DNA from: Rebecca billardiae RCC1528
Lineage: Eukaryota; Protista; Haptophyta
DNA length: 64,000 nt
NCBI GenBank assembly: GCA_965240325.2
Contig: OZ251237.1
Location: 1,426,001 to 1,490,000, forward strand
Direction of reading: 5' to 3'
Positions 3-27,684 of the stretch are shown piece by piece. The notes under the pieces are model-generated. The model was not told the DNA's origin. It did no database searches and worked only from the letters and a program-made list of their open reading frames with translations. Made by a program: the position numbers and the translations under genes. How positions within the stretch are numbered: position 1 is the stretch's first letter; each line of letters begins with the position of its first letter.

Positions 3-188
3 CGCTACATCCCAACCGCGGCAGCATTCGGCGGCATGTGCATTGGCGCGCTGACAGTCGTCGCCGACTTCATGGGAGCGATTGGCTCGGGCACGGGCAT
101 CTTGCTGGCGGTGACGACCATCTACCAGTACTTTGAGACTTTCGTGAAGGAGGGTGGCACGGACAGCGCGATGTCCGTCTTCTTCTAA
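3..188 (+). CDS. SEC61A: Protein transport protein Sec61 alpha subunit, C-terminal fragment (5' part outside window)
   Basis: Frame 3 reads [50 protein letters not shown]...SVFF*, the near-invariant TM9-TM10 of Sec61 alpha; stop TAA at 186-188. Confidence 0.97.
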
Positions 189-639
189 GCACGGACCCGT
201 GCCACCGACGCGCAGCAAGATGCGCGACTTTCCGCCGCGTGCACAACTGGATAAAGGACACTAGTGGGCAGTGCTGCCGAAGGGCAGACCGCGTGTCCGA
301 CTCGGCTAGTCGCGGCGTCTCACCGTCTGCGATAGCGGATATGGTCGGTGATTGTCCGAGCTGTGACAGCGGCTGGTCACGTGGCGCTGGCATCGTCGGC
401 TGATGATGGCGGCCGACTACTGTCAGCCAGCCCTCGTCGTAGTCGTGTCATACTTTTCTGCACTGTAAATAATAAATATATATATATACTATTAATTAAT
501 ATTGGCTTCGGACCGCTACAAGTATATTTATAATTATATATATTAACGCGACGTGGTATGCAACGGGCAGGCGTCAGAGTCAGCAAGCTGTAGCGGCAGA
601 TCGAGCAGCAGAGACAAACACCAGGATGGCAGCGCTCCT

Positions 640-2370
640 CGCCGTCGTCCCCCCCCCCTCGTAGTCGCCCATCGACAGGTTGCACGGAAAAATGACCGCC
701 CGCGACTGACAGATGTTACATTCCCAGTGGACGCGACCTGTCCACCCGTCTTTCGGTACATGGCGCCGTCGCCGTGCGCCCGGAAGCGGCGCGCGCTCTC
801 GCGCGCTGCACGATGCCCGCTGTTGCGGGTGCAGCGCGCCACTCCGCGCCTCGATCGGCCTCTTCCTGCTTGAGTAGCATGTACCGAAAGTCAACCACCC
901 TTGAGCTCCAATCGCGACATCGCGCAGCCGCGCGGCACGTTCGCGCGGCATCTGAGTCACAGAGGGCAGCAGAGCAGGCCGTCTCAGCCTGGAAGAGTCC
1001 CAGGCCCGGTGTGAAGAGGCGTAGCAATGCAAGGTGGATACGTGCCGTGCACGTCGCAGTCTGGCCGCACACGACGTTCGCAGCCTACGACTCGCGCGTG
1101 CGTGCTTGCGCTCGGCCACGTCCATTCATCAGCCGTGCGTGTATTGGATGGAGCGCGCGCGCGACTGGTCTTGCACATCACGTTGCGCAGCAACAGTCGC
1201 GGGAAGAGACACGCGACACTCATAGTATGCGACAACCTTGCAATGTTCATCCAGCGCGTGTTGGTGAGGGTCGAAAAGCTGGCGGCGGCTACCTCTCAAC
1301 CGCTCGGTTGCACTTGATGGTGCGCATGCGCGCCGGCCGGAGCGCTGAAGTGTCAGAGTCGTGGCATGCTCGAGGCTCTTGGATGAGGAGACGGCCGCTA
1401 CGCAGTCTATCTATGTCGTCAGCATGAAGAACGGCATCCACGCACGACGCCTCGCGAACGCACACCTGCTTCCGCGCTGTGACACGCATCGACAAGAACC
1501 GCTCAGCAGGCTGACGAGGCACCACGCCTCACTCACGCCCAAGAACAGCAGGGCGAGTGCTAAGAAGCGGGCGAAGGAAGCTGTCGCTCGCTGCGGCAAG
1601 GACGCTCTCACTGTATAAATGCCGTTGAGCCCTACATAGCCTTCTTTGTCTCGCGTGAGCTCAGCATCAAGGGTGAGGCGTGAGGTGTTGCGCAGACGGT
1701 CGCACAGGCTCACGTAGACAGCTCGATGGTGATGATCGAGAGCTTCTATCAAGTGTTCAGATGCAGAGCGCGTGCGTACACCGAGCAGGAGCTGACGACC
1801 TACATGGTATCTATGCCACGCGTGGATCTCCCCGCCGGCCCACAAGTCGCTGACGACTTATTGTCGAACTCGACGAATGCTCGCGCGCGGCATTGCGGGC
1901 GAAGGCTGCACTCGGGCGACGAGCTCGGTCCGATCATGATGGTTTGCCATACTGCGCGTGGTGACGGGCGTTGGGCTCGAGACGGATGGCGCGGGCGGTG
2001 TGACGCAGATAGAGCTGGGCGTGTGCGCTCGCTCCGAGACGCGTCGAAGGGAGGACTGTCTCCAGCTGCCTGATGATCCTGGACGAGAGGGTGATGCTGC
2101 TGTGGCTGTTTGCCGTCTCACGCGACGTGTGATGGGATGATGACAGTCACTGCCGACGGCGAGGGGGTCCCGGCTGTGCTAGCTCAAGGGATGTAGCGCA
2201 CGCGGACAAGTCCTGACGACACGCGCATTCAGCTAGTCATGATGCGGGGCTGCATCGACACGCGAGGCGCGCGCCACCCACGAGCGGCGAGTGGGCGGGC
2301 GCCATCCTTCAGAGGCGCCGTCTCTCAGAAATGTAACACCAAGGACAGTTTCCTGTGCAACCTGTCCATC
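640..2370 (+). mobile_element. Possible degenerate MULE/Mutator-like transposon relic
   Basis: Broken + strand frames give LMVRMRAG, LLDEETAAT, IDKNRSA, INAVEPY and GPIMMVCHTA, in the order expected for a MULE DDE domain then SWIM finger. Partial inverted repeat (aatgtaaca ... gtgcaacctgtc) at ~670-722 vs ~2330-2366. Many stops and frameshifts; weak similarity. Confidence 0.3.
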
Positions 2371-2979
2371 ACTCCATCGCCGAGCGGAAGCTCGACGCAC
2401 CGTCTGGCGTCGACGCGCGCGCGCCACCGCGGTGGTCGCGGTGCCACGCGTCGTCAGCCGTCGTCTCGAAGCAGTCGTCGTACGCAGTGCCCCCGCGGGC
2501 GCGCGCCCCCGGGCGCACGTGCGCCATGATATTAAATAATAATTATTATTATTACGAGTCTTCATTCAATTATTAGTTTAATAGGGGGTGCCGGACGTCG
2601 CCACCGCCGACCGCTGCCACGACCCGAGACGCGCTTACTCACGGCGCTGCCGAGACCTGGGAGTGCCGGCTCCGGCTCGTCGGAGGCCCGCCCGAAAGTC
2701 ATCGGACGGCAGCGGAATCCGGGGCGCGCGCGTCTGTCTGATCAGCCTCAGCCTGCCGCGGGACAGCCGCGCCCGACGGACAGGCGTGTCACCGTCTCAC
2801 CGACCCCACGTCTCCCTGCGGCCTCGACGGTCACGCGCAGCGAGGCCGGAAAGGCAGCGACCACCGCGCAACCGCCTGCGCGCCTCCGCGTGGTCCAGGC
2901 GTCGATGGCGATTGAACGCCAGCACAGGCGACCGAGACAGCCGGCGTGCAGCCAGCATGCAGCTCCTTTCTCGCCGCTG

Positions 2980-3181
2980 TCATTCGTCATCTGCGTCGTT
3001 CTGTGCGTCATCGTCCCCATCATCTGCAAGCCGGTACAACGCCGTGTCGCCGTCATCGTCGCCATCCTCGACATCGGGCTCGCCATCAGCTTCGCCATCG
3101 TCAGCCTCGCCGTCATCGGCCGCAGCGTCGTCGAGGTCCTCGGCTCCTTCCTCCTCCTCCTCCTCCTCAGCGCCCTCCTCC

Positions 3182-3234
<53 letters not shown>

Positions 3235-4559
3235 TTCCTCGTCATCATCGTCCTCGTCATCATCGTCCTCATCCTCCTCGTCGTCCTCATCCTCATCCTC
3301 ATCCTCGTCCTCCGCATCGAGCGCGTCGTCCGCGTCAGCGTCCACCTCGTCGCCGTCCGCCTCATCGTCGTCCACCTCGTCCTCGTCCTCGTCGTCCTCG
3401 TCGTCGTCGTCGTCCTCGTCCTCCTCCTCGTCGTCGTCGTCGTCAGCGGCGTCCGCGGCGTCGTCTCCATCGTCCTCCTCCTCGTCATCATCGTCGTCCT
3501 CCGCGGCCGCGGCCTCCTGCGCGCCGAGCTTCGCGCGCAGGTCGTCGACAGTCGACTGCAGCTCGGTCAGCAGCCGCTGCTGCTCGTCGACGCGCGTCGT
3601 GAGCTGCTTGTTCTCCTGCTCGCGCATCTGCACGTGCATCACGAGCGAGCTGAGGTGCGGGCCGAGGTTGGAGAGGATGTGCCCGCCGAGCTGCTCACGC
3701 ACCATCTTGCCCTTGCACCCGGCGAAGCAGTACACCTTCGACTTCGGGCAGATGTGCTCCGCGTGGTGCGGCAGCTCGCGGCGCCGCACCGACTGCGTGC
3801 ATTGCTCGCACTTGGCGCGGCCGTTCGGGCACAGCTTCTTGTGCTTCGAGAGATCGCGGCGCGGGAACATCTGGCCGCAGCCGAGCGTGCACTTGCAGAT
3901 AAAGTACAGGCACTCGGACAGGTGGTGCTTCTTCAGGTCCATCCGCCGGTGCTGCCCGCACTTGTCGTGGCCGTACTCGCACTGCACGAGTGCGTACCCG
4001 CACGTCAGCTCGTGGTCCTGCAGGTTGCCGCGTGTGCCCTTCCACTTGCACCCGTCGAAGGTGCAGGTCGTGTCCATGTCCGCGACGATGCGCCGGATCG
4101 GGACCGACGCGCGCAGGTCCGACGTGCGGATCGCCTCGCGGCAGACGGCGCACTTGCGGTCGCCGTTGGCGATCTGGATCGCGATGCAGTTCTGCGCGCG
4201 CGCGGGCGGTGCGCGCGCGCGCGCGTACGCGCGCGGGGCATGGGGAGTGCCGCGGTGCGCGAGAGCGCGCGAGCGCCGAGAAGCGATGTCAAAATGCGCG
4301 TCGCACCCGGAGAGAACGCTTCGCGGTCGGTCGTGACGCGGGGAGGGCGCACCTCGCAGTAGACGTGAGCGCATGGCGTCTCCACGGCCTCGTTCAGGAT
4401 CTCACGGCAGATGGGGCAGGTAAGGTGGTCGGCGGCGAGGGCGACCTCATCACGCCGCGGCTGCTTGTCGCCTACCTCGGGGGACTTGGCGGCCTCGAGC
4501 GCTTCCTGTTTGCGCTTCCGATCCGCGTGACGCATCTCGCGCGTTTGCGTCCCCGTCAT
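2980..4559 (-). CDS. RING finger + TRAF-type zinc finger protein with coiled coil and long D/E acidic tail
   Basis: Exons 4559-4353 and 4191-2980 (GT-AG intron 4352-4192) join CPIC...PCAHVYCE|NCI...CAVC (C3HC4 RING). Followed by repeated Cx3-4C..H..C TRAF-type fingers, a coiled coil and >130 mostly D/E residues. Confidence 0.88.
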
Positions 4560-5563
4560 GAGCAGCCCGCCTGGGTGGCACAGCCGAGGTCCTGCGTGAG
4601 AGAGCCGTGAGGAGCTGCCGCAGCGAAAAATCAGCAGCAGCCGGTCGTTTGAACAACTGCCACTTGATGAAACATGACCCGGACTCACCGAAGGCTGAAT
4701 AGGAGATTGGTGAAAGCCAGCTATTGGCAGTGCGCATCTTCGTTTACAAGAAACGCTTACCCACGTACCCCGTTCTGACCAGGCCTCCCTGTCCTTGATC
4801 AGGCCCGATGCGGACGGGCGAACGCATGCGATCCTTCGCATCCGGCCGGGGAAAAAAACCGCGCAACTCGGCAACTTATGCCAACCGTCGCTCCGCTTTC
4901 CAAAGGCCGGACGTAGACGGCCAGATGTGCAGCAGCTCCGCGAGTCGTGAGGTGGAGTGCGTGCGGTCCGGCACCACAAGCGCTGCCTCCTTGGGGCAGA
5001 TGCAGGATGGGCTGTGGTGCCACGCGTGCCTCGTCCACCTCGTCGTGAGTGGCATGCCTCGCGACGATGACAATCTCCCATCACCGAGCTTACAATACTG
5101 CCACGCGGTGCGCACCACATCAAACTCAACTGCGCACCGGGCATCGTGCGAAGCGCGCCAGGCGAGCCCGCATCTCTTTTCGCATCCGTAGGGGTTGCTG
5201 AGAGACTCCCTTTCCGGCTGCGCAGCGGCCGCCAGCTTGCCATTGGCGCGTGAGACTTGGTGCGTGAGACGCCCGTCGTCCCGCCCCATCTCGGGTCACA
5301 TGGCAGGGTCAACGTGGACGGCTGGGCGCTGCGCTAGCTAACGGACGCGCGCTTCACGCATTGCCGCCGATGTGGACTCACCGATATGGCGGCCAAGTAC
5401 AGCCTGCTGTGTGGCGCACCCCGAACGGCAGGTTCTCTTCTGAGAGTGCGCAGATTTCCTCGTCTTTGCTGCAGCTGAGGAGTGAGGTGCGCGTCGACCT
5501 CATCCGTGGGCCCTGGAATCCGGGCTGGAATTGATATCGAGCGAGGATGAGCACTACATGGGC

Positions 5564-6286
5564 TCAACCGAAGCCAGAGCCGCGTATCAACAGGACTGCT
5601 ATTATAATATAAGAATCGTCAGTACTATTATAAATCGACCATATGCGTGCCATATGCCGGCGCGCCGCCGATTATTAAATATCTATAATTTCGCTTATGC
5701 CGCCGGCCACCCGGCGACGCGGACGCGAAGCAATCTGCCACTGCTAGTAATAGTAGTATCACGCAGTGTCGTGAACATTACAGACACTCCCAGAGCCCGC
5801 TGTCAGTGTCACACTGTTCAGTGTTCTGGTAGATTCCTGCGGCGCAAGTGGACTGCCAACTCGCGCGGCATTCCGCTGTCGACGTCATAATAGTCGCGTA
5901 GTAGTCCTTCTAAAGACGACGCGACTTCGTCTTTAGAAGGACTACTACGCGACTATTTATGACGTCGACAGCGGAATGCCGCGCGAGTTGGCAGTCCACT
6001 TGCGCCGCAGGAATCTACCAGAACACTGAACAGTGTGACACTGACAGCGGGCTCTGGGAGTGTCTGTAATGTTCACGACACTGCGTGATACTACTATTAT
6101 TACTAGCAGTGGCAGATTGCTTCGCGTCCGCGTCGCCGGGTGGCCGGCGGCATAAGCGAAATTATAGATATTTAATAATCGGCGGCGCGCCGGCATATGG
6201 CACGCATATGGTCGATTTATAATAGTACTGACGATTCTTATATTATAATAGCAGTCCTGTTGATACGCGGCTCTGGCTTCGGTTGA
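5564..6286. repeat. Near-perfect long palindrome (arms ~356/360 bp, 7-nt loop)
   Basis: 5564-5919 is the reverse complement of 5927-6286 apart from a 3-nt and a 1-nt indel; loop CGCGACT at 5920-5926. Mirrored ORFs 5531+ and 5957- confirm it. Confidence 0.97.
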
Positions 6287-6396
6287 CCCGCCTGCCAGAG
6301 ACGGGCACTGTGAGCTCCTTCATGAAGTCACTCGTGAAAACTGCACAGGAGGACCTCAATGGATCGGCCTATAGATGATGACTTCAGAGCGATATT

Positions 6397-6613
6397 GGGC
6401 CAACAAGCACTTCCTCTATAGTTAAGACTCTATTTTACTATGTATTTACCCATTTCAGACTCTGGTCAGAATACGGTCCGGGAGCGATCCGGATGCACCC
6501 GTAGCTATTGGAAATATGTCACCGGACTGGGTAAATAGCTATGAAAACAGAGTCGATCCGTGAAGTAGTCACAAACTGAGTTTCACACTATACCCTGGGC
6601 ACTTATTGGCCAT
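6397..6613. repeat. Small AT-rich imperfect inverted-repeat element (MITE-like)
   Basis: gactctattttactatgtatttaccca (6426-6452) pairs imperfectly with tgggtaaatagctatgaaaacagagtc (6528-6554); weaker outer pairing near 6397-6421 / 6588-6613. Confidence 0.5.
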
Positions 6614-7412
6614 CCATATAGCAACCCTACTTGGGGCCCTGATGTGGCCGTGGGACACTTCACCGAGTTATTCACGTCGGGCGTTCATTCTGCGTGCGGC
6701 CGCAGCAGGAATGATGCGAAGATCATTTTCGGTACGCGCGCCCGGTTTCCATGACCGGACTGGCAGGGGTCCGAACCGGATGAGCCAGGGCCACGCAGCA
6801 GATGCTAAAGGCCGGATTAGTAACGCGGACTAGCCTTAGAAGCCGTGACGGCCCACTCACTCCGTGAGTGAGTCCGACCGCGGGTCCACTCCGGCAAGAG
6901 TCAAGTGCCGTGTCTGCGGCTCCGAGTCCGACTCAGCACTCCGATGGCAGTGACTGTGACTCAGTGACAGTGCCAGTGCCCGAGTAGCTGAGAGTACAGT
7001 GACTCAGTCCCGCGGTGCTGCAGATCAGTCTGAGTCTGGCAGCACAAAAGTCAGTCACCCGTCCGTCGGAGCGAGCCACCGCTTGACAGTTTAATGGCGG
7101 GCCGTTATAAGATTTCGTTATACTTATAGTGGCCACCGCGCCGGGCGCCCACCCGCCGCACCGCCGCCGGCGCCGCACTCCGCGAGCCTTTCCGGCGTGA
7201 CGATGATGTGATGGTGCCAGCGAGCCGAATAACATATCAGTTCGAGGCTGCGCGGTGCGACGGTGTTGCATCGTGAACGTCCGGCGCTCAGACTCCCTCC
7301 CTTCATCAGCCACCCTTCAGCCGCATTCACACGCCACGCGAAGGCCTGATTGCTACAGCCGCCCGGGGCGGCCCCGTGCGTCTCGACGTGTTGCGGAGTG
7401 CGCCGACGGGCT

Positions 7413-7558
7413 GGGAGGAAGGGTAAGGGAGAGGAGGAGAGGAGGGAAGAGAGGAGGAGAGGAAGGAGGAGAGGAGGGAGGAGGGAGGAGGGAGGAGAGG
7501 AGGGAGGAGGGGAGAGGGAGGAGAGGAGGGATGGGGGAGGAGAGAGGGGGAGGAGGGG
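7413..7558 (+). repeat. Polypurine (G/A) low-complexity tract
   Basis: Almost pure G/A run (gaggagaggagggaagagagg...) just past the CMC2 stop. Confidence 0.9.
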
Positions 7559-7588
7559 TTCGAAAGGGTGGCCGGACCGCGCAGACAC

Positions 7589-7852
7589 TTAATCGCGCTG
7601 CGCGCCACGCGGTGCATCCACCCCGTACTCTTTGCACACCTCCTCCCAGCGTGCGCGCTTCTCTCTCGCAGCCTGCACACTCTTGTGCACTTTCTGCTTC
7701 TTGTCCTCGCGCAGGCAGCGATCGAGCGCCGTCTTGTAATTGTTACAGGCCCCCGTGAAGCGGTTGAAAGGAGAAGCCTCGTGGCACTTGAAAAGTGCCA
7801 CCATATGCGGGTCGCAAGGGTGGTCCTGGCCGATCACAATCTGCGGATGCAT
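7589..7852 (-). CDS. CMC2: COX assembly mitochondrial protein 2 (twin CX9C, Cmc1/Cmc2 family), 87 aa
   Basis: MHPQ...CDPHMVALFKCHEASPFNRFTGACNNYKTALDRCLRED: MHP start, two CX9C pairs and the F-x-G-x-C-N signature. Confidence 0.88.
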   Translation of the reverse strand: MHPQIVIGQDHPCDPHMVALFKCHEASPFNRFTGACNNYKTALDRCLREDKKQKVHKSVQAAREKRARWEEVCKEYGVDAPRGAQRD

Positions 7853-8185
7853 CCTGCCCTCCCAAAAGGTGGCTATCAGCCACGCGGTCACGCCCAAGCC
7901 GCCATGATGAATCCGCTCGAAGGGCGAAGGGCCGAAGGCGGGCTTTGGAGCCAAAGCGGTTCCGGTTTCCAAGCGGAGCTGCAGGGAGGGCCGAGGGAGC
8001 CAAGCCGGACTCTTGACCACCACTCCGGCAATGTTGTGGTGGGTGCCCAGTCAGGGCAAAGCGCCAAGCGCGCGCGCGCGCGTGCGCAAGCCCAAAGCCG
8101 CAAGGCACCCGCTCGGGCTGCAGCGCAGTGGCGGCCCGGACCAACCTGCATCGGCATGGTGCGGTGAAGGGTGAGGCTTTAGACG

Positions 8186-9741
8186 ATGGGGCAGTCGGGC
8201 TCGAGCGAGCAGGCGCGCTCGCCGTTCGACGGCGCCGATCCTGCGCCGACGGCCAGCGTGCCTCCGAGCACTGCCGCGCCTGAGCGCGTTACGCTCATTC
8301 CCACCGTGCTGCAATGGTCGCACGGTGGGCGGATGGTGTACGTGACGGGAACGTTCAACAACTGGGCGGAGCGCATACCGATGCGGCTGAGCAGAAACGA
8401 CTTCACCGTCTGTCTGAACCTGCCAGTGGGGACGTTTCAGTACAAATTTATCGTGGACAACGAATGGCGCTTCTCGCCGTCGCAGCCGTTGGTCCAGGAC
8501 GCGCAGGGCAACGTGAACAACTGCATCACAGTCCTCGACGAGGAGGTGTGGAGGCTGCGCCGCGCCGAGGGTGCGCGAGCGCGAAGGAGGGGCAGGGGGA
8601 GGGGTTGCGCGTGCAGGGGGCGAGTGGTCGGCATCGCAAGCGCGCGTGTGCCCGGTGGGAGCTGCCCAGGTGCACGCTGCTGCTCACACGCGGGCTCGAC
8701 GGACCGCCCCGCGGCGGGCGCTTGCCCACAGGATTTTATGCGCGAAAACATCGGGCCGGCGTCGGACCCGAACGACGGGCCGTTCAGCAACGACCCGACC
8801 CTCGCGCAATATGGGCAGAGCCTCGCCGATGACGCCATCCAGCTGGCGAAGGACCCGCCCCCGCTGCCCACTCAGCTCACGGTGCGCACCCGTCGCCCGG
8901 CGTGCGCGCGCGCCACGAGACATGCGGCGGGCGTGCAGCCCATGGCGCTGCGACCGCCCTGCGGCCGCCCATCGCGGCCGTTCTGCTCGCACGGCGCGGG
9001 CCGAGGTCCCGCGTCTCACCCAGCGCGGCCCTCCCTGCCGCGCCGCCCCTCCACGCAGCGTGTCGTTCTCAACTCGGAGGTGAGCACAGCGCCACCGACG
9101 ATGGTGGACGAGCTGCCACCGCCGCTGCCGTGCACGCTGCTGCACCTGTGCTGGCAGCAGCCCGCGCAACCCGAAGGGTCGGGCGTGGCTCAGGTGCGCG
9201 GCCGCGAGCAGCGGCGTGCGCCCCGCGCCATACCCTACCGGTGCGCTCGCTCACCGCCGCCTGTCGCCCGCACACCACCCTGCGCGTGTGCGCACCGCGT
9301 CGCTCCTGGCGTGCGCGCCGCGCCCCACAGGCGATTGTCGTGGCGTCATCACAGCGATACAGGGCCAAATATGTGTCGCTGGTGCTGTACAAGCCGCCCA
9401 GATTAAGAGGGGCTGGCACGCGGCTGGTGCCGAAGGAGGGTGCGCGCCGCCGCGCCACCCAACGCATGGCGCGTGCGCCCGGGACGTGCGCTGAGCGGCC
9501 CTGCCCACCCGCTGCGCGCTCGCGCCGCTCGCGATGCGCAGGCACTGCGAGCGTCGACACAATCAGCAGCACGCGCGCTGCCGATGCGCTCACTGCCGCA
9601 GCCGGCGACCGATCGCAGTCGTCCTCGATCGTTGCATCCGCGCTGAGCGCACCTCGACCGCCGTCGCTCATGCAAATAGACGACGACGGTGGCGCCAGCA
9701 GCGCGAGCGGCGGTGTACCTCTCAACCAGATGATCGAGTGA
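8186..9741 (+). CDS. PRKAB: AMP-activated protein kinase/SNF1 beta subunit
   Basis: MGQSGS myristoylation start; CBM48 (WSHGGRMVYVTGTFNNW...YKFIVDNEW); ASC region PPPLP...LHL...RYRAKYVSLVLYKP. Exons 8186-8545, 8732-8881, 9059-9193, 9331-9439, 9542-9741 with GT-AG introns. Confidence 0.93.
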
Positions 9742-16436: not shown

Positions 16437-16950
16437 TGCGGACGTCCACTGACGAAAGATTGGAGTCCACATCCAGTCATCATCAGCCTGGAACGAAGTT
16501 GAAAGTGTTGACTGAAGCAAGGCCCTTGACTGAAGGCCAATTCGCGACCACTGGGATGAAGCAACTACGGTCCTAGCAAGGGCCGACTGGTGACTCAGAC
16601 TCAGTGTCAGTGCTGACCTTGTGACTTTCGCTCGCCCGCTCGGTCATCTCGTGGTGAGACTGGTAGTGTATAACGAGACCCAGGCAGCCGCAGGTGCGAG
16701 CAGCGAGGGCGCCCGCAAGTGAGTAGCTTAGTGACCGTCGTGCCGCGCGGGCGTGCGCGGCGCCCGATCCGGGGCTGCGGGAAAATCCAACTCAGACAGA
16801 GTAGACAGACTGTCCGCCGCAAGAACCGTCCCGTATAAGAAGAAGAAGAAGTTCGCGATGAGAGAGAGGGGGGGGGGAGAGAGAGCGAGCAAGCGAGCGA
16901 GCGAGCGAGAGAGAGAGAGAGAGAGATGGCGCTCATCATTATTCTCGGAC

Positions 16951-19900
16951 TTATTCTGCGCCTGCTGTGTCGTCGCGCTTGGCGGCGGCCGCCACCAGCT
17001 TCAACTCGATGTCGCTCACGGCGGCGACCGGCTTGCGGAAGGTGACCTCGTACAGGCGCTCGACCACGCGTGCGCCCTCGTCGTGCTCGCGCAGCAGATC
17101 GCTCAGCTGAGGTCGCCGGCGCGGTTGGCGGTGGTGGGTGCGCGCGGGGGTGAGGGCGCGAGATCGCCGCGTGGGAGCGCTTGACGAGCCAACGCGGGCG
17201 CGCCGACGCGGCGGAGGCGCGTGCGAGCATCTGGCGGGCGCGCGCGCGCCGCGGTCACGCACCCGCTTCTGCACCGACGCGACGCCCTTCGCGGCAAAGT
17301 CGGCCGCGTCGGTGGCCCACGTGCTCAGCGCGGGCTGGACGGCGCGCACCGCGTGCGCGTGCCAGCCGTAGTGCGCCTCCGCGTAGTCAAACAGAGCGCC
17401 CCACAGCTCGGGCAGCTCGTCAGCAAGCACCGCGCCCTTCTCGCGCTCGAGCCGCAGCGCGTGGTCTACGGTGGCCTTGAGGCGCGCGACCGCGCTCGCC
17501 TCGGTGCGCACCCACGTGTCGGCCGTGCGGATCTTGCGCAGCAGGGCCTCGCGCGCGCGGATCGCCGCGGCCGCGCGCTCGAGCCTCGAGCTCTCGACGT
17601 CGATGGCCGCGGCGGCGAGCTGCTCGTCCGAGCGGTGCGCGCGGCCGGAGCCCGGGTGGCCGCCGCGCGACGCGAGCAGAGTCTGCAGCACCGGCGCCGC
17701 TCCCGCCTCCTCGCGCGCCGCGTCGTCGAGCGGCGTGCGCCCGAAGCGATCTTCGGCGTTGATCGAGATCTCGGGGACGGAGATGAGGAAGTTGCACGCG
17801 TTCACGTGCTGGCACGACGCGGCGAGGTGGAGCGCGGTGCGGCCGTGCGCGTCGGCCGCGTTCACGGAGCAGCGGAAGCGGATCAGCCTCTCGAGGTGGC
17901 TCACGTCGTTAGCGGCGGCGGCGCGGCACAGGTGGCGCGCCGCGTCGAACTCGCCGAGCCGCGCGCCGCGCTCGAGGAGGAGCGCGCCGGTCGCGTCCTG
18001 CCGCGCCATCATCGCGTCGCGCAGCGGCGTCGCGCCCGAGCGGTCGGCGGCGTTCACCTCGGCCTTGTGCTCGAGCAGCAGCCGGACGGCGGGCGCGTGC
18101 CCAACCGCGGCGGCGAGGTGCAGCGCCGTGCGCTGCTCCGCGTTCTGCGCGCTCACGTCGCCGCCGAACTGCGCGAGGCGGCGCAGCGTGGGCAGGCCGT
18201 CCTCGGCGTGCGCGGCGCACAGCAGCGCCTCCGCCTGCGAGCGCGAGCCGTGCGTGCCGCCGTGCCGCGCGAGCAGCTCGGCGGCGGCGCCGTGCTCGCA
18301 CGCGAGCGCGTCGGCGAGTGGCGTCGCGCCGCGCCGGTCCTCCACGTTGGCGCTGGCCTTGGCCGCGAGCAGCAGCTCGACGACGCGCGCGTTGCCGCCG
18401 CAGGCGGCGAGGTGCAGCGCGGTCCTGCCGTCAAAGTCGGCGTAGTCCACGTCCGCCTGCGCCTGGTGCAGCAGCCGGCTCACCTTCTCCAGGTCGCCCT
18501 TGGCGCACGCAGAGCACAGCCGCGAGTGGTACAGCTCACGCCGCTTGCGCTTGGCGATGGTGACAATCTGAGCGCACGGCGCGGCGCGCGCGGCACAGGC
18601 GGAGAAGGGGGTGCCGGCCGCGGCGGCGGGAGGCGAAGGAAGGGGCGGTCGAGGGGCGCGGCCGCGGCGGCGGCGCGTGGCGTGAGTGCGCAGCGCGCTC
18701 GGCGTGCGCGGTGCGGGCACGCGCGCCGCCCCCGCACTCCACTACGCCGCGGCGCGCGGCGCGCGGCGCGCGGCGCGCGCGCGGTGCAGCGCGCGCGCTC
18801 GCATCGCGCGGCCGCGCACATTCTGCACAGAGCGCATGTCCTCGTCCTTGATCGACGTGACGTCGGAGCGCGCGTCGGAGTCCGCCGAGAGCGCGGAGCG
18901 GCCAGACGACGATCGCCCCGAGTGGCTCCCGCTGAACACGGACGGGGCCGAGCCGCCGGACCTCCCGGACTCGGAGGCGCCGTCGCCCGCCGCGGACGAG
19001 ATCGACGAGCGCCGGCCGGACATGGCTGAGCGCGCCGAGCGCGCCGTCGCGACACCTGCGGGGCGCGCGGCCGCCGGCAGGGCGGGGGCGTGCGCGCGGC
19101 AGGGCGCGGCGCAGCGGCGCGGCGGCGCGCGGCAGGGCGGCGCCCGTGAGCGCACGCCACGCCGACTGCACTCGCCATCTTTGCCCGGGAAGCGTTGGGC
19201 CCAACCAGGCGTGGCTCGGCGCCACGCCACGCCGCGCCGCGCGGCGCCGCGCGGCGCGGTGCGGCGCGGTGCGCACCTTCGTACTGCCGCATCGCGTTGT
19301 CCATCACCACGTCCTCCTGCGAGGGGAAGAGCTTGAGCAGCTCGCGGTACCGCTCGCGCGTGAGCGAGAAGACGAGCGCGTGGCCGCCCTTGGACACGCG
19401 CGCGTTGGTGATGTACCGGATGCCGAACACAAACTGCATGGGACCGCGCGCGGGGCGCCGTGCGCGCGCGCGGGCGTGGCCCAGAGACGCGCGGGAGCGG
19501 AGGCGGGTGGGACGAAGGGGCAGCCACCGTGGCACGGCGGCGCATCGTCTCAGCGTGGCCGGAGCGCGGAGGGTCACGCGGCGCGCGTGCGGCCTGGCGC
19601 GGCCGCCTGACGACGCCCCGCTGCGCCGAGGCAAGCCAGCAGCAGCACTGAGCGCGCGCGCTGTCGGCGCGCGCGCCGCGGATCGCAGATCGCCCATCCC
19701 GCCCGCGCCGCCGCGCGCGGCTGCGGCTGCTGCGGCTGCTGCGGCTGCGCACCTGCACGTCCCCGACCGTCTCCCCGGGCCCGATCTCCTCGAACGCGTC
19801 CGCCGCGTCGTTGAGCGCGCCGCCCTCCTCCTCCGCGTCGCCGTACGCCTCGACGGTGCCGTGCGCGACGAAGAGGAGCTCCTTGCAAGCCTCGGCCACG

Positions 19901-22900
19901 CGGAAGATGACCGTCTCCGCCTCGATCTCGCGCTCGAGCAGCATGGAGGACAGCCGGTTGAGGAAGCCGTCGGAGCAGCCGCGGAGGAGGGAGGCGCCGC
20001 CGACGAGCGCGCGGTTCGTGTGCGCCGCCACCTCCATCTGCAGCGCGCTCGGCAGCCCCGCGTAGATCTCCTCGTTGGTCACGTTTGAGAGGGAGGCGGA
20101 TTGCAGCCGCGTGATGAAGTACTTGCGCAGTCGCACCTTCAGCTCGGCGGGGACGTCGATGTGCTGGATGTACGAGTTGGCGAGCTCGAGCTTGGCGCGC
20201 TTGGCGACCACCTCGTCGTCCTGCTTCATCACCACGCCCGAGATCCCGCCCACCGTCCACGCGTACACCGTCATGTTGAGCACCATCATGAACACGTAGA
20301 AGACAAACTCGCCGTAGTTGGCCGGCAGCTGCGCAGCGCCGAGCGTCGTCATCATCGAGACCACAAAGAAGAACGAGACGATGTAGTGGTCGAACATCTC
20401 GGCCTCGTGCGAGGCGTACTGCGCGGCGTACCCGCCTACCGCCTTGTTCTGCGGGGACACGTGTGCCGCGTGCGAGCGCAGCGGCGGCGGCAGGAGCGGG
20501 CGGCGCGCGTCGGCGGCTCAGCGCGGCGCGGCAGGCGCTCTCGCGCACGCCGGTGGCACGGGCGAGGGCGCGACGCCGCCACGGCGCGGGCGCAGCACCT
20601 GCACGGCGTACTCGTCCGACCAGGTGAGCGCGGTGAACGAGTGCGCGAGCTCCGAGTAGCCGAAGACGTTCCACACGCAGCTGCACAGGTGCATCGTGAC
20701 GAGCAGCACGGAGATGAACTTGAGCAGCCCGGCGCGCAGGTCATCGTCACTCACCGACGCGTCCCACCGCTTGTACGCCTGCGCCCACACGGCCGGCCGG
20801 GCGGGAGGGCGGGCGGGGCGAGGCGCGCGCCGGGTGGGCGGGCGGAAGGGCGGGAGGGGCGAGGGGCGCGCCGGGTGCACGCGGGGCGCACCTTCCACAC
20901 ATGCTTCAGCTGCGCGAGCCGCACGATCCTCAGCCCGATCACGACGGCGTGCTCCGCTCCGAGCAGCAGCGCAAAGACGTCGTGCGGCCACGACGCAAAC
21001 GCGTCGAGCGCAAAGTCGGTGTTGAGGTAGTGCCGCCGGATCTCGCGCGGGTCGAAGACCTCGCGCGAGCGCTCGTTCACGTGCGTGACGTGGAACATGA
21101 GCAGCACGCGCAGGATGTACACCACGTCGAAGCCGAGGTTGATGTCGGTGAGCCAGTGCATGTGCACAGTCTGCTCGATGAAGGACAGCTGCAGCGGGAT
21201 GATCAGAAAGTCAAAGACCACCTGGAAGAGGAACCAGCGGTGGCACGCGGCGTAGAAGGCGGAGCGGATCGAGACGATGTACCACGGCTTCTCGCCGATC
21301 TCGCGCGCCGTCGCCGCGCCGTCGCCACCGCCGCCCAGCCCGAGGCTGACGAGCATGCCCGCTGCGCCGCGATCGGTGCCGTCAGCTGATGCGCCGCCGC
21401 GCGCGCCCTTCTGCTGCCGGAGCTCGGCCGCTGCCTGGCCGAGCGCGCTCGCGAGCCGCTGCCACGTGACCCGGTCGTCCTCGTCCTCCACCAACGACAT
21501 GGCCGCCGCGGCCGCGGCGGCCGCCGCCTTGCCGCCGTCACCGCCCGCGCCCGCCAAGCCGGCGCCGGCGCGGCGCGCGCCATCGATCTCCAGGCCGAGA
21601 TAGTCCGACGCCCACGCGCGCACGTGCGCCGCGCGCGCGCCTGGCGGCAGCACGACCACGGTCTCGATCAGCGCGAGCAGCGCCGAAGCGCGCACCTCGT
21701 CCGTCGCGCGGAGCCGCCGCGTGTCGAGCCGCTGGTGGATCGCGTCGCCGATCGCGCTGTACGCCGCCGCAGAGACGAGCGCAGACCGCACCGCCTCGGC
21801 GACGCGCGCCGCGTCGGCGGCGGCCTGGATGCCGCTGGCGCTGAGCTGGGCGGCGTCGGCGTCCGAGCCCGCATGCGCGGCCGCGGCGCCGGGCGCGGGC
21901 TTGCGAGCGCCTCCAAGCGCCAGTCGCAGCTCGGGGCTCGCCCCGCTGCCCCCGTTGCCCACGCCCGCCTCGGAGCCGCCGTCGTCCGAGCCGCCGCCGC
22001 CGTCGGCCTCGGACGAAAGCAGGATCCACGAGGTGACGCCGACGAAGAACTGCACCTCCGTCATCTGCTTGAGCCCCTTGCGCGGCGCGTCCGCGGCCTC
22101 CGCCCACGAGGTGCGCTCGTTCGCGCCTGACATGCGATCCGCGAGCGACTCGCGCGCGCCGGACCGGCGCCACGCGCGCGAGTCGCGCGCGCCGCCCGCC
22201 GCGGCCGCGGCGGGCGCGGCGGCGGGCGGCGCGGCCACGTCGTCGTCCCACGCCACCTGGAGCCCCAGCGTGCCGGGCTTGACCCCGGACTTGCGCCGGT
22301 ACTGCTCCGCGCCCGCGGGCAGCCCGAGCGAGCCGGAGGCCAGCGGCAGCGGCGCGGCAGCTGGGGCGGCGGAGACGGCGCTGGGCCGCTCGGCCGCGGC
22401 GTTGTCGACAAACATCGGTCCCTCAGACTCGGCGCCGCCCACGTTGCTGGCGACGTCGTCGCCGGCCTCCGCAGGCGCATCGGCCGACGCGGGCGGCGCC
22501 GGCGCGACGTTGGCCCTGCGCGCCGTGTCGGCGACGGCGGGGGGGCGCTCCGCGACGTGCTCGCCCGCCGTGTCGGCGCCGAGTGGCCCATCGTTGAGCT
22601 CGGACGAGCCCGCGCCCGCGCTCTCGCGGCCATCGCCACGCCGGCGCGCCTGCGGGCTCCCGCGCCGCCGCCCCGCCGGCGAGCCAAACTGCCGATCCTG
22701 CGCGCTCGGCGCAAAGGCGCGCGAGGCCTCGAGCAGGTGCGAGACGAACGAGCGGATCTCCGCGGAGCCCATCTCGCCGAGCGAGCCTGCGCGCGCGCGC
22801 GCACGGCGTGGGCATGGCACGCGCGAGCGCACGCGCGCGTGGCGACGTGAGCAATCGCGCTCGCGCGCGCGCGCGCGCGCGCCGCGGTCCGCGCGAGCAC

Positions 22901-25900
22901 GCGAGTACGATGCGCGCCGCACCTTGGAGCTCGCGCACGTCGCGCAGCCGGATTGTGCCGCGCTGCTTGCGGTCGAACACCTTGAAGAGCGACGTGATCA
23001 CGAACACGGCCTCGCCCAGCGCCTCGGACAAGCTCAGCGCAGAGGAAGCCGACGCGCCGCCGCGGGCCGCGCGGCCGCTGTCGCTGTCCCCCTGGCTGTC
23101 CGCGTGCTGGCTCTCAGACTCCCGGACACCGCCGCGGCGGGTCGGGCTGCTGGGCGGGCTGGGCTCGGGCGTCGTCGCCGAGGTCGTCGAGACGTGCAGC
23201 GGGCCCGAACCCGGCGCGGAGCGGGTGCTCCACTGGCTGGGGCTCTGGTACTGCGCGGCGCCCGCCTGCGCCCCTCGGTTCGACTCGCTTAGCCGGGAGG
23301 CGGGGACGGGCGAGCCGCCATCCTGCTCGGTGCCGTCCGCCAGCGGGTTGCTCGCGCGGCTGGTGCGGCTCGGGCGGCCGTCGGCGGTGAACGAGATGCG
23401 CCCGCCGCGCGAGCTCAGGGTCTGCGACACGCGCGCGAGGGCGGCCCCCGCCGACGCTCGCGCGCGCCGCTTCGCGTGGCTCGCCTCTGCGTCGTCGCTG
23501 AGCTGGCCCGCGCCCCAGCTGATCGGGCCGTTGGCCGAGTGCCGGGCGGCGAGGATCTCGAGCAGCCGCTTCGAGCAGAAGAGGACGACGTGGCCGAGGT
23601 CGGAGAGGAAGACGGGCTCGACCGAGCCGTCGTCGGACCCAGCCGCCGCGCCCTGCCGGATCAGATCGGGCCCGCCGCCGAGCGGCGCGCCCAGCGCGGC
23701 GGCGGAGCGCTCGTCGTACTGCTGAGCGAGCGCGGACGCGGCGAGGCCGCGCGACTTGGCCTCGTCGACGGCGTGCAGGTGCTTCGAGAGCTCGAGGAGC
23801 GAGAGGCCCGAGCCGCGCCTCTGGATGGCGGCGCGCGCGGAGCCGGCCTGCGTGTGCCCGCCCCGCCCGGCCTCCACCTTGGGCACGCCGAGGACCATCA
23901 TCTCAGGCAGCGCGGGCTGCTGGCCGCGCGCCGACGCGCGCCGGCCCGCGATCGCCTCCATCTCGTCGGCCTCGTCGAGCTCGGCGAGTCCCTGGAGCTC
24001 GGCGGCGCCGAGCGCGCCGCCGAGCGCGATGCTGCTCGCCGCGCCGCTCGACGGCGCGGACACGCCGATGAAGTTGTGCAGCTCGGCGTAGATCTCGGTC
24101 AGCACCTCGTCCGCCTCCGCCGCCGAGAGCGCCAGGTCTGAGAGGAGGATGGAGCCGAGCGCGCTGTGCTCGTCGAAGCGGCGCGCGGCGCTCGGCAGGT
24201 GCGCGCGCTCGCTCGGCGAGAGCTTCTTGTCAAAGGCGGCGCGGAGCATCGAGAGCCCGGCCTCCGCCTTGGGCAGCTGCAGCACCAGCTTGATGAACCG
24301 GGCCTTGTCCGAGCTGACCACGTCCGCGGGCGCAGCCGCAGCCGCCGCCTCCGCCGTGGCGCGCGAGCGGCGGTCGGCCGCGCGCCACGGCGCGGCGTTG
24401 AAGCTGCCGTCGTCGTCGGGCCCGCTGTCGTCGGCGGAGGACGAGTCGGCGTCCGACGGGTCCGAGTCCGTGTCGCCGTCCTCCTCGTCCTCGATGCCGT
24501 ACTCGTTGATCCAGATGTCCGCGTGCCGGCCGAGCGTGCGGAAAAGCGCGTGCTGGTGCTTGGACAGCTCGGCCATCCGGCGCGAGAGCTTGCCGAGCGA
24601 GGTCTCGACCTCGAGCGTCTTGCGCAGCATGCCGTCGTGGTCCGCCTTGCGCGTGCGCGCGCGCTCGTTGATCTTGCGGTTGAGCGCGTACATGTCGACC
24701 GACTCCGCCTTGGCCGCGCCGAGCAGCGCCTCGTACTGCGCGTACGTGCGCGCGCCGGCCGTCGCGCCGCCGACGAGCGCCGACTCGGGCGGCAGCTTGG
24801 CGCCGCAGTGCAGCGCGAGCACGGACGCGATCTCCGGGTGGCACTCGAGGGCGTCGATCAGCGGCGGTCGGCCCCAGCGGTCGGCGAGGTTCACGTCCGC
24901 CATCGCGGAGACGAGGAGGTACGCCGTCGAGATCGAGCCCGCCTGCACCGCCGCGTGCAGCGCCGTGCGCTTGTCAAAGTCCGCGTCGTCAATCGGCGCG
25001 CCCATGTCGATCAGGAAGCGCAGCTTGTCCGCGTCGCCCGCGGCCGCGGCCGCGCGCAGCCGCTCGCCCATCGCCGCCTCGTCCAGCTTCGGCGAGTTGC
25101 GCGCGATCTGGCGCGAGACGAGCACGTGCTCGTGCTCGATCGCCTCGTCGAGCGGCGTGCGGCCCCACCGGTCCTCCGCGTTCACGTCCGCGAGGTTGGC
25201 GAGCAGGAACTCGACGACGCGCGTCGAGCCGTCGGCGGCGGCGGCGTGCAGCGCGGTGCGCCGGTCGTAGTTCGCCGCGTTAATCTCGACGCCGTGCGCC
25301 ACGAGCATGCCCAGGTGCGCCACGTCGCCCTTCTTGGCGGCGGTGAGCATGCGCTCCGCCGGGCGCTCGAGCTGCAGCACCGAGCCCGTCTTGGAGAGCT
25401 CGTCCGCCACGGCCGGGTGCCGCTTCTCGACAGCGTTCTGGATGGGGCTCTGGCCGAAGCGGTCGATCACGTTGGCGTCCGCGCCGAGCTCGCACAGCAG
25501 CCGGACGACCGTGAGGTTGCCCTGGATCGCGGCGAGGTGCAGCGTCGTGCGCTGGTCGTACGTGCCCTGGTCGAGGTCGAAGCCGCGCGCGACGAGCGTG
25601 CGCACCGTCTCCGTGTCGCCCTGCCACACGGCGAGCAGCATCTGCGAGAGCTGCTCCTCGTTGCGCTCGACGACTGCGGCGCGGATCATCTCGCGCAGCG
25701 CCTCGTGCTCCTTCAGCTCGTCCTCCGACAGCGCGTTCAGGTCGATCCCGACCGGGCCGCCGGCGAGGTCGTTGCCCGAGCGGTCGAGGCCGTACCGCCG
25801 CAGCAGGTTCTGCGTGATCCGGTCGGCGTGCTCGGGGTACGAGGTGATGAGGTCGTCGAAGGCGGAGCTCGAGAGCACGGCGAGCGTCACCTCGCCCGTC

Positions 25901-26526
25901 GGCGTCGCGAGCACCGTGTACGGCTGCGGCACGCCGGCGACGAAGGCGACCTCGCCGACGACCTGCCCCGGCCCGATGTCGGAGCGCACCGTCGAGATGT
26001 GCACGTCGCCCTTCCGCACGTGCAGCGAGCCGCCGATGCACCACGGCAGCTCGGTGCTGCCGTCGCCGCGCTTGAAGAGGATCTCCTTGGGCATCATGTA
26101 CCGCTCGCGCAGGTACAGCGCGAGCTGGTTGAGGAACTGCGGCGTGCAGCCGACGAAGAGCGACGTGGCGGAGAGCTCGCCCGCGTACTGCTCGACCGCC
26201 ACCTCCGTCTTGAGCGAGAGCGGCATCTGCGAGAAGATCCGCTCGGTCGCCGTCGCGCTCTTGCGGTGCTGGAACTCGTAGTGGCTGCGGATGCGCGCGC
26301 CCAGCTCCGTCGGCAGCCGACGCTCGATGACGTAGTCGTCCACCGCCTTCAAGAGCTGCTTGGCGTGCACGGTCGCCTCGTCCGTGCGCACGAGGTAGTG
26401 GAAGAGCGTGCCGAGCACGAACGCGTAGAAGACGATCTGCACGAGCGCGACCACGATGGCGAAGATGATCTCCGACTGCACGGTGATCACGAGCGTGCCG
26501 TACCCGAGCGCTGCTCGCGCGCGCGC

Positions 26527-26557
<31 letters not shown>

Positions 26558-27684
26558 AGACGGCCGCGGCGGCGCGCGCGGGGCGCGCGTCAAGATGAGG
26601 CGTGCCAGTGCGAGGACGACGCGCGCGCGCGCGCGCGCGCGCGGCCGACCGACCCGCCGCGCGCACCCGTCATCCCAGCCCAGGCCATGTAGAGCCCCAT
26701 CAAGTAGTTGTGCCAGCCGGTCGCGATCGGCGAGTGCAGGTCGAGCTCGGGGTTGTGCGTGAGCAGCGCAAACTGCGCGTTCCAGTGCGGCAGCTCGAGC
26801 GGGTCGGCCGCCCACTTGTCCGCGAGCGCCCACCACACGCACGCCGCCCAGTGGGGCACGCTCACGAGCACGAGGGTGAACTTGTACACCGCGAGGAACG
26901 AGACGTTGGTGCTGAGGTCGTTGTTGATCTGCTCGACGTAGTTGATGAGCTCGCGCACGCGCAGAATGCGGAAGCCTTGCAGCAGCTGGAAGAGCACCAC
27001 CTCGTGGAAGACGAGAGCGAGCACGCGGCCACAGTGCAGCGAGGCGATGATCACGAGGTCGCGGAAGCCGTGGGCGATGGTGTACGGGATCACCTGCGGC
27101 TTGCCGTCCAACACCTCGGCCTCCGACTTGGCGCGGCCCGCGCCGTCGCGCCGCGCCTGCGCGAGCTCGTTGAGCACCCAGCCGAGCTCGAACAGGTCGG
27201 TGAGCACGTCAAGCGCGATGATCGCCGGCTGCGCCAGCGTGATCGACGGGAGAGCCAGCCGCAGCGGAATGAGCAGGTTTTCGTACGTGAGGACGGGCAG
27301 CCGCGCGATCTTGGCGTACTTGCGCATCCGCGCCGCGCGCTCGCGCGCGGAGATCTCGGCCTCGAGCCGGCGGCGCGCCCCTTGCGCCGCCGCGTCGTCG
27401 CCCACGAGCACAGTGCGCCACTTGACGCGCGAACCCTTGGCGTGGTGCCGCGCGCCCGTTCGGAGGATCCCCTTGACCTGCGCGGACTTGGCCCCCCGCT
27501 CCGTGCGTGCGGCCTTTCCGCCGTCGCTGCCGCCACCAGAGAGAAGCTGCGCGCGCGCGCGCGCGGCATCGTCAGAGCCGTCGCGCTCGGCGGCCTTCTC
27601 GCCATGCGAAGCGCTCTGCTCGCTCTCCACCGGCGCGACTTGGCCGGTGCCGACGATGCCGAGCTTGCGACCCCAGCTGCTCAT
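16951..27684 (-). CDS. Giant two-module Shaker/AKT-like K+ channel: (6TM-pore-CNBD-ankyrin)-EF-hand-(6TM-pore-CNBD-ankyrin), ~3,076 aa
   Basis: Nine exons: 27684-26667, 26510-22923, 22786-20892, 20778-20599, 20448-19753, 19433-19277, 19055-18820, 18567-17263, 17106-16951 (9,231 nt, in frame, all GT-AG). Pore 1 MTALGYG; pore 2 MTTLGAA; S4 FRILRVRE and LRIVRLAQLK; CNBDs GEVAF and GDVQF; many TALHLAA ankyrins; EF-hand-like loop DRKQRGTIRLRD. Confidence 0.92.

Follow-up and report, generated by a model that had tools for sequence, protein, structure and literature searches.

A predicted two-module, ankyrin-bearing Shaker-type channel of the haptophyte Rebecca billardiae, with a G-Y-G filter in its first module and a G-Y-G-less filter in its second

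The stretch of DNA analysed in this work (referred to below as the window) comprises 64,000 nucleotides (nt) of contig OZ251237.1 (positions 1,426,001 to 1,490,000 of assembly GCA_965240325.2) from the haptophyte Rebecca billardiae RCC1528, and it carries on its minus strand a gene for a predicted ion channel of 3,076 amino acids (aa). In this protein the parts of a plant Shaker channel, viz. six transmembrane segments (6TM; S1 to S6), a pore, a C-linker, a CNBD-homology domain (CNBHD), and ankyrin repeats, occur twice in one chain. Judged from its sequence, the nine-exon gene with its two-module channel frame is confirmed as real and nuclear. The coding sequence of 9,231 nt contains no internal stop codons after its frames are joined at GT..AG sites, and the gene ends lie at the same coordinates as in a first-pass annotation of this DNA, whose proposal of one in-frame gene of nine exons is borne out by the stop-free 3,076 aa model, the uniform GT-AG introns, and the GC content at third codon positions (GC3). 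The gene is made up as follows.

16951..27684, minus strand: whole gene, with the ATG at 27684 and the TAA at 16953-16951 (9 exons, 8 introns, 3,076 aa)
26667..27684, minus strand: exon 1, N-terminus, module-1 S1-S5, pore helix, and the first half of filter 1 (..AWAGMT); GC3 0.80-0.98
26511..26666, minus strand: intron 1, 156 nt, GTGCGC..GAGCAG, interrupting filter 1
22923..26510, minus strand: exon 2, remainder of filter 1 (ALGYG), S6, C-linker, CNBHD 1, ankyrin block 1, and the first 630 aa of the linker
22787..22922, minus strand: intron 2, 136 nt, GTGCGG..GCGCAG, the sole non-coding DNA between the modules; junction validated by seven homologues
20892..22786, minus strand: exon 3, the rest of the linker, then S1-S4 of module 2 (Pfam Ion_trans, E 0.0023; hydropathy peaks)
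20599..20778, minus strand: exon 4, module-2 S4-S5 link and S5
19753..20448, minus strand: exon 5, from the pore helix of module 2 over filter 2, S6, and the C-linker into the first part of CNBHD 2
19277..19433, minus strand: exon 6, remainder of CNBHD 2
18820..19055, minus strand: exon 7, Ser-rich spacer from CNBHD 2 to ankyrin block 2
17263..18567, minus strand: exon 8, ankyrin block 2 (aa ~2600-2890; Pfam Ank_2, E 1.8e-39) and a helical tail
16951..17106, minus strand: exon 9, conserved C-terminal end (..YEVTFRKP..) and stop codon; the homologues P0121 and P0122 end alike

The coding signals used for the gene model were GC3 and splice sites. The length of open reading frames (ORFs) alone is uninformative in all six frames, because the window is very GC-rich (0.67 overall and 0.72-0.81 inside the gene) and stop codons are rare; antisense or off-frame ORFs of up to 810 aa that overlap the gene (e.g. 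24166-26598 and 17221-19029, both on the plus strand) are spurious. GC3 is 0.94-1.0 in one minus-strand frame from ~27450 to 22951, drops over one 150-nt bin, and is 0.86-1.0 in another frame from 22800 to 20851, from where the pattern runs on to the TAA; this switch of frame falls exactly at intron 2. All eight introns are of the GT..AG type and 113-319 nt long, with the donor GTGCG in seven of the eight and the acceptor CAG in every case. Their GC content (0.80-0.88) exceeds that of the exons and they are rich in (GC)n runs, the intergenic value being 0.51-0.66. The flanks of the gene (28200-27750 and 16950-16500) likewise have a GC content of 0.51-0.66, and periodicity is absent from them. 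A compound microsatellite, consisting of (CT)n, (GCTC)n, a C run, and (CT)n (GC ~0.57), lies at 16850-16945, in the 3' untranslated region right after the stop codon. No second copy of the channel is present elsewhere in the 64-kb window. The domains and motifs on which the rest of our analysis relies are located as follows.

26494..26676 (span including intron 1), minus strand: filter 1, G-M-T-A-L-G-Y-G-T, aa 337-345
25789..26379, minus strand: C-linker and CNBHD of module 1, aa 384-580, with the SKOR-like phosphate-binding-cassette stretch GEVAFVAGVPQPYTV
24814..25656, minus strand: ankyrin repeats of module 1, aa ~625-905 (Pfam Ank_2, E 1.1e-35)
21288..24813, minus strand: inter-module linker, aa ~906-2035 (~1,100 aa), coding throughout by GC3
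22722..23007, minus strand: EF-hand-like island, aa 1508-1557, FKVFDRKQRGTIRLRDV..LGEMGSAEI, spanning intron 2, with ungapped alignments
20323..20358, minus strand: filter 2, S-M-M-T-T-L-G-A-A-Q-L-P, aa 2258-2269, in exon 5

Pfam matches to cNMP_binding and ankyrin are found in module 1, and matches to Ion_trans, cNMP_binding, and ankyrin in module 2; together with the alignment of the modules to each other and the collinearity of homologues, they uphold the earlier description of two full 6TM-pore-C-linker-CNBD-ankyrin units. The two modules align over 744 aa with 27% identity (E 1e-64); they are old paralogues and did not arise by recent tandem copying. In each of them the parts follow one another as in the plant Shaker channels SKOR, GORK, and AKT1. 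The nearest solved structures by sequence are SKOR, GORK, AKT1, and AKT5, and a single alignment in exon 2 runs from S6 via the CNBHD into the ankyrin repeats against SKOR 309-730. These channels are also the nearest by fold, as seen in AlphaFold2 (AF2) models that were made of the modules of the orthologue P0121 in place of the intron-split modules of the window. The predicted local distance difference test score (pLDDT) was 86.7 for module 2 and 81.2 for module 1, and both models match GORK, SKOR, AKT1, HCN, and CNG chains in Foldseek over ~475-495 columns, with plant Shakers accounting for all of the top 19 matches of P0121 module 1. Plant Shakers have one module per chain and form tetramers, whereas the window gene has two modules per chain and no Pfam match to a KHA domain in its protein.

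The membrane parts of the two modules differ in character. In module 2 there are six clear hydrophobic peaks in addition to the Ion_trans match, and S4 carries two Arg and two Lys. The voltage-sensor-like part of module 1, whose S4 carries three Arg, is divergent and has no Ion_trans match in the window gene or in its orthologues. The stretch of module 1 that aligns with S1 of SKOR (27235-27325, aa ~121-150) is charged (K-Y-A-K-I-A-R-L-P-V-L-T-Y-E..), and close orthologues keep the pattern A-R-L-P-x-L-T-x-E-E within it. This stretch has no separate hydropathy peak, and AF2 nonetheless draws a helix there in the P0121 model. A loss of S1 from module 1 was considered; the modelled helix and the ~475-column Foldseek alignment to GORK and SKOR speak otherwise, at the uncertain strength of a predicted structure. 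The modules thus look degenerate in complementary ways, module 1 combining a G-Y-G filter with a divergent S1-S4 region and module 2 combining an Ion_trans-type S1-S4 region with a lost G-Y-G. The best-conserved 40-aa stretches (0.63 identity to three orthologues) are S6 with the beginning of the C-linker in module 2 (aa 2281-2320) and, jointly with it, the matching aa 361-400 of module 1, and the conservation of the former argues for module 2 as a working pore-lining part. The cassette of module 1 is of the SKOR type (G-E-V-x-F..P-Q-P-Y-x-V) and ends in ..PQPYTV in the window gene, and the corresponding region of module 2 reads ..GIRYITNA, which is out of register with R-T-A. Because the cNMP-binding arginine of R-T/S-A is absent from the cassettes of both modules, these are CNBD-homology domains for which gating by cyclic nucleotides is doubtful.

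Filter 1 is read only after splicing across intron 1 (..A-W-A-G-M-T / A-L-G-Y-G-T.., the slash marking the splice), and the orthologue P0001, which has no intron at filter 1, shows identical spacing to the spliced window gene. The first-pass annotation had called this filter, TALGYG, canonical; the G-Y-G is indeed present, but the Thr of T-V-G-Y-G is Ala here. The module-1 filters of the closest relatives similarly retain G-Y-G (viz. T-A-L-G-Y-G, T-S-M-G-Y-G, A-T-V-G-Y-G, and T-R-I-G-Y-G), with this Thr often replaced. For filter 2 the letters TTLGAA and the absence of G-Y-G agree with the first reading; the pairing of GAA with GYG that it implied is one of two possible alignments, since module 2 has one residue fewer between filter and S6 than GYGD channels do. 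In contrast to plant Shakers, which have T-x-G-Y-G in every pore loop, the window gene thus has A-L-G-Y-G in module 1 and T-L-G-A-A-Q in module 2.

The second repeats of the two-module ankyrin family contain no G-Y-G at all. Close orthologues have a filter 2 of the form T-x-L-G-[AILVM]-x-Q-[LVI]-P, which is one residue shorter than T-V-G-Y-G-D-x-x-P, the group formed by Cymbomonas and MMETSP sequences has T-G-[V/I]-I-G-D-M-[F/Y]-P, which is one residue longer, and Rhodelphis and Diacronema have further variants. It had been allowed at first that GAA could be a sequence error or could lack conservation in orthologues. The loss of the K+ signature from module 2 is conserved across the family, which rules out a sequencing error, and the exact letters GAA are not conserved. 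On these comparisons, the predicted asymmetry of the pore is a conserved trait of the family.

The two modules are connected by a linker in which conserved islands (aa 1001-1160, 1241-1320, 1521-1560, and 1761-1900 in the conservation profile) alternate with indel-rich stretches of low complexity, and which is partly disordered. No Pfam domain is matched in the linker, even at E<=1, and Pfam searches identified no LOV/PAS or RGS remnants in it. Three of the islands, at 24049-24528 (aa 1001-1160), 23569-23808 (aa 1241-1320), and 21693-22112 (aa 1761-1900), are kept in P0121, P0123, and P0124, and these Pfam-unmatched islands may be undescribed regulatory or assembly domains. The motif at the junction of exons 2 and 3 resembles a first EF-hand of the calmodulin type whose loop (D-R-K-Q-R-G-T-I-R-L-R-D) is spoiled; EF-hand_7 is matched at this motif by seven of eight members, in all cases below the Pfam cut-off. 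Bona fide EF-hands are found just ahead of module 2 in the relatives P0211, P0192, P0152, and P0205. In another relative from the module-2 clade, P0129 (a transcript-like JGI contig of 8,490 nt), the part immediately ahead of module 2 holds four LOV-type PAS_9 domains along with an RGS domain.

An exhaustive HMMER search with exon 5 as the query yielded 2,858 hits. The best of these include numerous proteins of 2,000-3,000 aa that are matched at two places, more strongly in their second half, and no fewer than 12 two-module proteins in this size range, full or 5'-cut, are collinear with our model. A search for the domain architecture in algal proteomes, which had been suggested as a check at the outset, thus recovered two-module ankyrin relatives from Diacronema lutheri (KAG8466681.1 and KAG8464917.1) and from the green algae Cymbomonas tetramitiformis (KAK3264010.1) and Bryopsis sp. 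(GMH40854.1), as well as three Rhodelphis marinus proteins and MMETSP transcripts. In five of the relatives (P0121, P0123, P0160, P0165, and P0152), Pfam identifies two Ion_trans domains, two cNMP_binding domains, and two ankyrin blocks. The family members are labelled as hypothetical or "CNBD-containing" in the databases (NCBI, EukProt, and MMETSP). One of them, KAG8464917.1 (P0125; 1,466 aa), aligns with S4-S6 of module 1 (model aa 219-415) and then with the linker just ahead of module 2 and module 2 itself (aa 1778-2512), neither ankyrin block being present; the annotation seems to have left out exons of a two-module gene, and it is an apparent case of how easily such genes are split or truncated by annotation in GC-rich algal genomes. 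A word-index protein search with module 1, in which a length filter screens out proteins of 3,000 aa, returned only short ORF calls on 2-6-kb contigs, of which L001-L003 are too short or 5'-cut to reveal a second module. The 3' end of L001 (3500-3547; ENA metagenome contig NODE_18619, ERZ4290864) is the Nextera transposase adapter CTGTCTCTTATACACATCT..., an assembly contamination.

In an unrooted maximum-likelihood tree based on 73 S5-to-CNBD segments (332 columns), the family's first repeats are split from its second ones with support of 100/100 and in 100% of the bootstrap trees. Within both repeat clades the same sub-branches recur (viz. the Rhodelphis trio, the Cymbomonas group, and the group of Diacronema and the window gene), and this mirrored branching of separate clades indicates one ancient duplication or fusion followed by co-evolution of the modules. 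Both module clades together are separated by a branch with 95/79 support from the plant Shakers, represented by three plant sequences, from short two-repeat proteins that lack ankyrin, and from four-repeat CNGK-like proteins.

The relationship of this family to channels that have been described before requires some care. An in silico survey of 2020 described tandem CNBD channels with two repeats, in dinoflagellates and oomycetes only and with none in haptophytes or green algae; ankyrin is unmentioned in it, and filter deviations are called rare (PMC7576140). These tandem channels share with the window gene two 6TM-CNBD repeats per chain that are less than 30% identical and fall into separate clades with mirrored branching (PMC7576140). 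The short tandem proteins found in our search measure 1,200-1,400 aa, show gaps of 180-500 aa, are without ankyrin, have T-V-G-Y-G-D in both repeats, and are placed elsewhere in the tree, the taxa of these proteins being unverified and the sequences of the survey itself (PMC7576140) lying outside our tree set. CNGK (tetraKCNG) of sperm is likewise a multi-repeat channel of the CNBD family in one chain, but its repeats number four, its filters are of the K+ type, and ankyrin is absent from it, and the four-repeat hits form a clade separate from that of the two-repeat window gene. A literature search on ankyrin-bearing two-module channels in algae found no description of them. The first-pass statement that no characterised channel has this layout therefore holds insofar as no member has been characterised functionally; as to novelty it goes too far, since two-repeat tandem CNBD channels have been published (PMC7576140) and ankyrin-bearing homologues are already present in NCBI, EukProt, and MMETSP. 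What is new, to judge from the papers searched, is an ankyrin-bearing, SKOR/GORK-like two-module clade with a conserved asymmetric pore, and not the first tandem CNBD channel.

Two further systems are informative as analogues. Plant TPC1 has EF-hands in its inter-repeat linker, as do several members of the two-module family. Two-pore channels (TPCs) have two unlike 6TM repeats per chain, dimerise, and divide labour between the repeats (PMC8665364). TPC1-3 belong to the Nav/Cav branch and are without a C-linker, CNBD, or ankyrin, so that their likeness to the window gene is one of topology (2 x 6TM) only, and no TPC is found among the sequence or fold matches listed. AtKC1 retains GYG. According to the structure entry and the abstract of the preprint, AKT1 and AtKC1 form a 2:2 heterotetramer in which AtKC1 is the silent, modulating partner (PDB 7wm1; bioRxiv abstract). 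This assembly and the predicted one have in common a Shaker-type pore in which two kinds of subunits are combined in a 2:2 ratio; the former differs in being encoded by separate genes and assembled non-covalently. For GORK, a symmetry reduction from C4 to C2 has been reported (PMC12742848).

The window gene encodes, by its model and joined reading frame, a single predicted subunit of 3,076 aa with two old paralogous Shaker-type modules and belongs to a conserved algal family; it is probable, in our assessment, that two chains form a twofold 2:2 pore. P-loop channels require four pore loops, and wherever such channels are known to have several repeats (K2P, TPC, Nav/Cav, and CNGK) the repeats of one chain, to our knowledge, line the same pore, for which reasons two chains per pore are expected. 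Two module-1 and two module-2 pore loops would then alternate around one twofold-symmetric, pseudo-tetrameric pore, which would thereby resemble a 2:2 heterotetramer held together covalently. The A-L-G-Y-G strands would be supplied by module 1, and the G-(aliphatic)-x-Q strands, from which the Tyr and the second Gly are missing, by module 2. Weak K+ selectivity is expected of such a filter, because neither of these residues is present in two of its strands and Ala replaces the S4-site Thr in the other two; with fewer ordered K+ sites the pore would be a weakly selective or non-selective cation pore, for which HCN, CNG, NaK, and signature-sequence mutants are analogues. Gating would come from two unlike voltage-sensor-like domains, the CNBHD-ankyrin ring, and the linker, and cyclic nucleotides would not be the trigger. 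TPC, K2P, and the AKT1-AtKC1 heteromer serve as analogues here, from which we infer one 2:2 pore per dimer as the likeliest mechanism.

This interpretation presupposes that the modules are parts of one chain, which could fail in two ways. The modules could be two adjacent genes, tandem paralogues with separate transcripts, of which the second would begin at the ATG at 22770, the sole candidate start for it. This ATG is located 16 nt past the proposed acceptor of intron 2, and some database matches (P0122, P0128, and P0130) hold module 2 only. However, P0122 and P0130 begin within the linker, as expected of 5'-cut contigs or first-Met ORF calls. Module 1 has no stop codon of its own unless it is spliced, since without splicing translation would continue out of frame for another 167 aa until a stop is reached, and the coding signals of the modules are separated by merely 136 nt, which is intron-like. 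The splice at intron 2 (aa 1535/1536) is centrally placed within a conserved motif (..L-F-K-V-F-D-R-K-Q-R-G-T-I-R-L-R-D-V-R-E-L-Q / G-S-L-G-E-M-G-S-A-E-I..) that is gap-free across the splice in seven homologues (P0121, P0122, P0123, P0124, P0130, P0134 (54% identical), and P0160 from Diacronema lutheri), and because the Met of L-G-E-M-G-S in this ungapped motif is the one encoded at 22770, that ATG is an internal Met. Relatives also have full-length fused transcripts: P0123 is an MMETSP transcript that carries both modules, and the P0121 contig (8,395 nt) has a single ORF at 83-8197 with an upstream in-frame stop and a GC3 of 0.97. The P0121 protein (2,704 aa) is collinear with our model in blocks at aa 62-1333, 1504-1637, and 1777-3051 with 40-44% identity. 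On this comparative evidence the two-gene reading is essentially refuted, its remaining chance being negligible, and the continuity across 22923/22786 that was first proposed is sustained by GC3, the ungapped motif, and the fused transcripts of relatives. Very unlikely, too, is a polyprotein-like precursor whose linker would be cleaved after translation to give two subunits at a fixed 1:1 ratio and free to assemble. The indel-rich, low-complexity stretches between the islands would suit such processing, but the Pfam search of the linker found no protease motif or domain, and the conserved islands of the linker, together with the EF-hands or LOV/RGS arrays in the linkers of relatives, suggest that it functions within the mature protein.

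A weightier alternative, which we nevertheless regard as unlikely, is that the chain is single and its pore is not shared, with either separate pores of four first modules and four second modules, or a conducting module 1 accompanied by a module 2 that is a silent regulatory or voltage-sensing partner. Several observations weigh in this direction or otherwise against the favoured reading. The linker is of great length and in part disordered, and a flexible connection of ~1,100 aa would let the modules join separate pores. The K+ signature is lost from module 2, whose CNBD-ankyrin parts could make it a purely regulatory partner; silent Shaker subunits are known, AtKC1 being an example as described in the abstract cited above, and conduction in the absence of GYG is found in homotetrameric CNG and plant CNGC channels (PMC7576140). 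The membrane topology of module 1 is itself uncertain in view of the unusually charged S1-aligned stretch. In distant members of the family the module-1 signature decays as well (viz. G-Y-Q, G-Y-S, G-Y-D, G-Y-I, and G-N-L), and hence it is only among the haptophyte-type members that a good filter contrasts most sharply with a bad one. Against an unshared pore stand the arrangement noted above for the repeats of K2P, TPC, Nav/Cav, and CNGK chains, the fusion and the mirrored trees, which signify a long co-evolution, the seemingly complementary degeneration of the modules, and the strong conservation of S6 in module 2. We thus continue to favour one twofold pore formed by two chains.

It is quite possible, and we propose only tentatively, that the family represents an ancient class of algal channels, present in haptophytes, in prasinophyte and ulvophyte green algae, and in Rhodelphis, in which a GYG and a GYG-less module are interdependent, the 2:2 assembly is covalent, and the pore is not strictly K+-selective. 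The linker would in that case be an evolvable regulatory socket, which is plain in the window gene and filled with EF-hands in some relatives and with LOV/RGS arrays in others. If the modules line one pore, the family would be the counterpart of the two-pore channels in the CNBD/Shaker clade, and nature would have fixed in it, at the level of the gene, the kind of 2:2 heteromers and C2-symmetric states that are now being observed for AKT1, AtKC1, and GORK of plants. The family offers a ready system for studying the effect of two GYG and two non-GYG strands on ion selectivity, and the Rebecca billardiae gene, as its simplest member with a plain linker, provides a natural control for the candidate light-regulated channels with LOV/RGS linkers.

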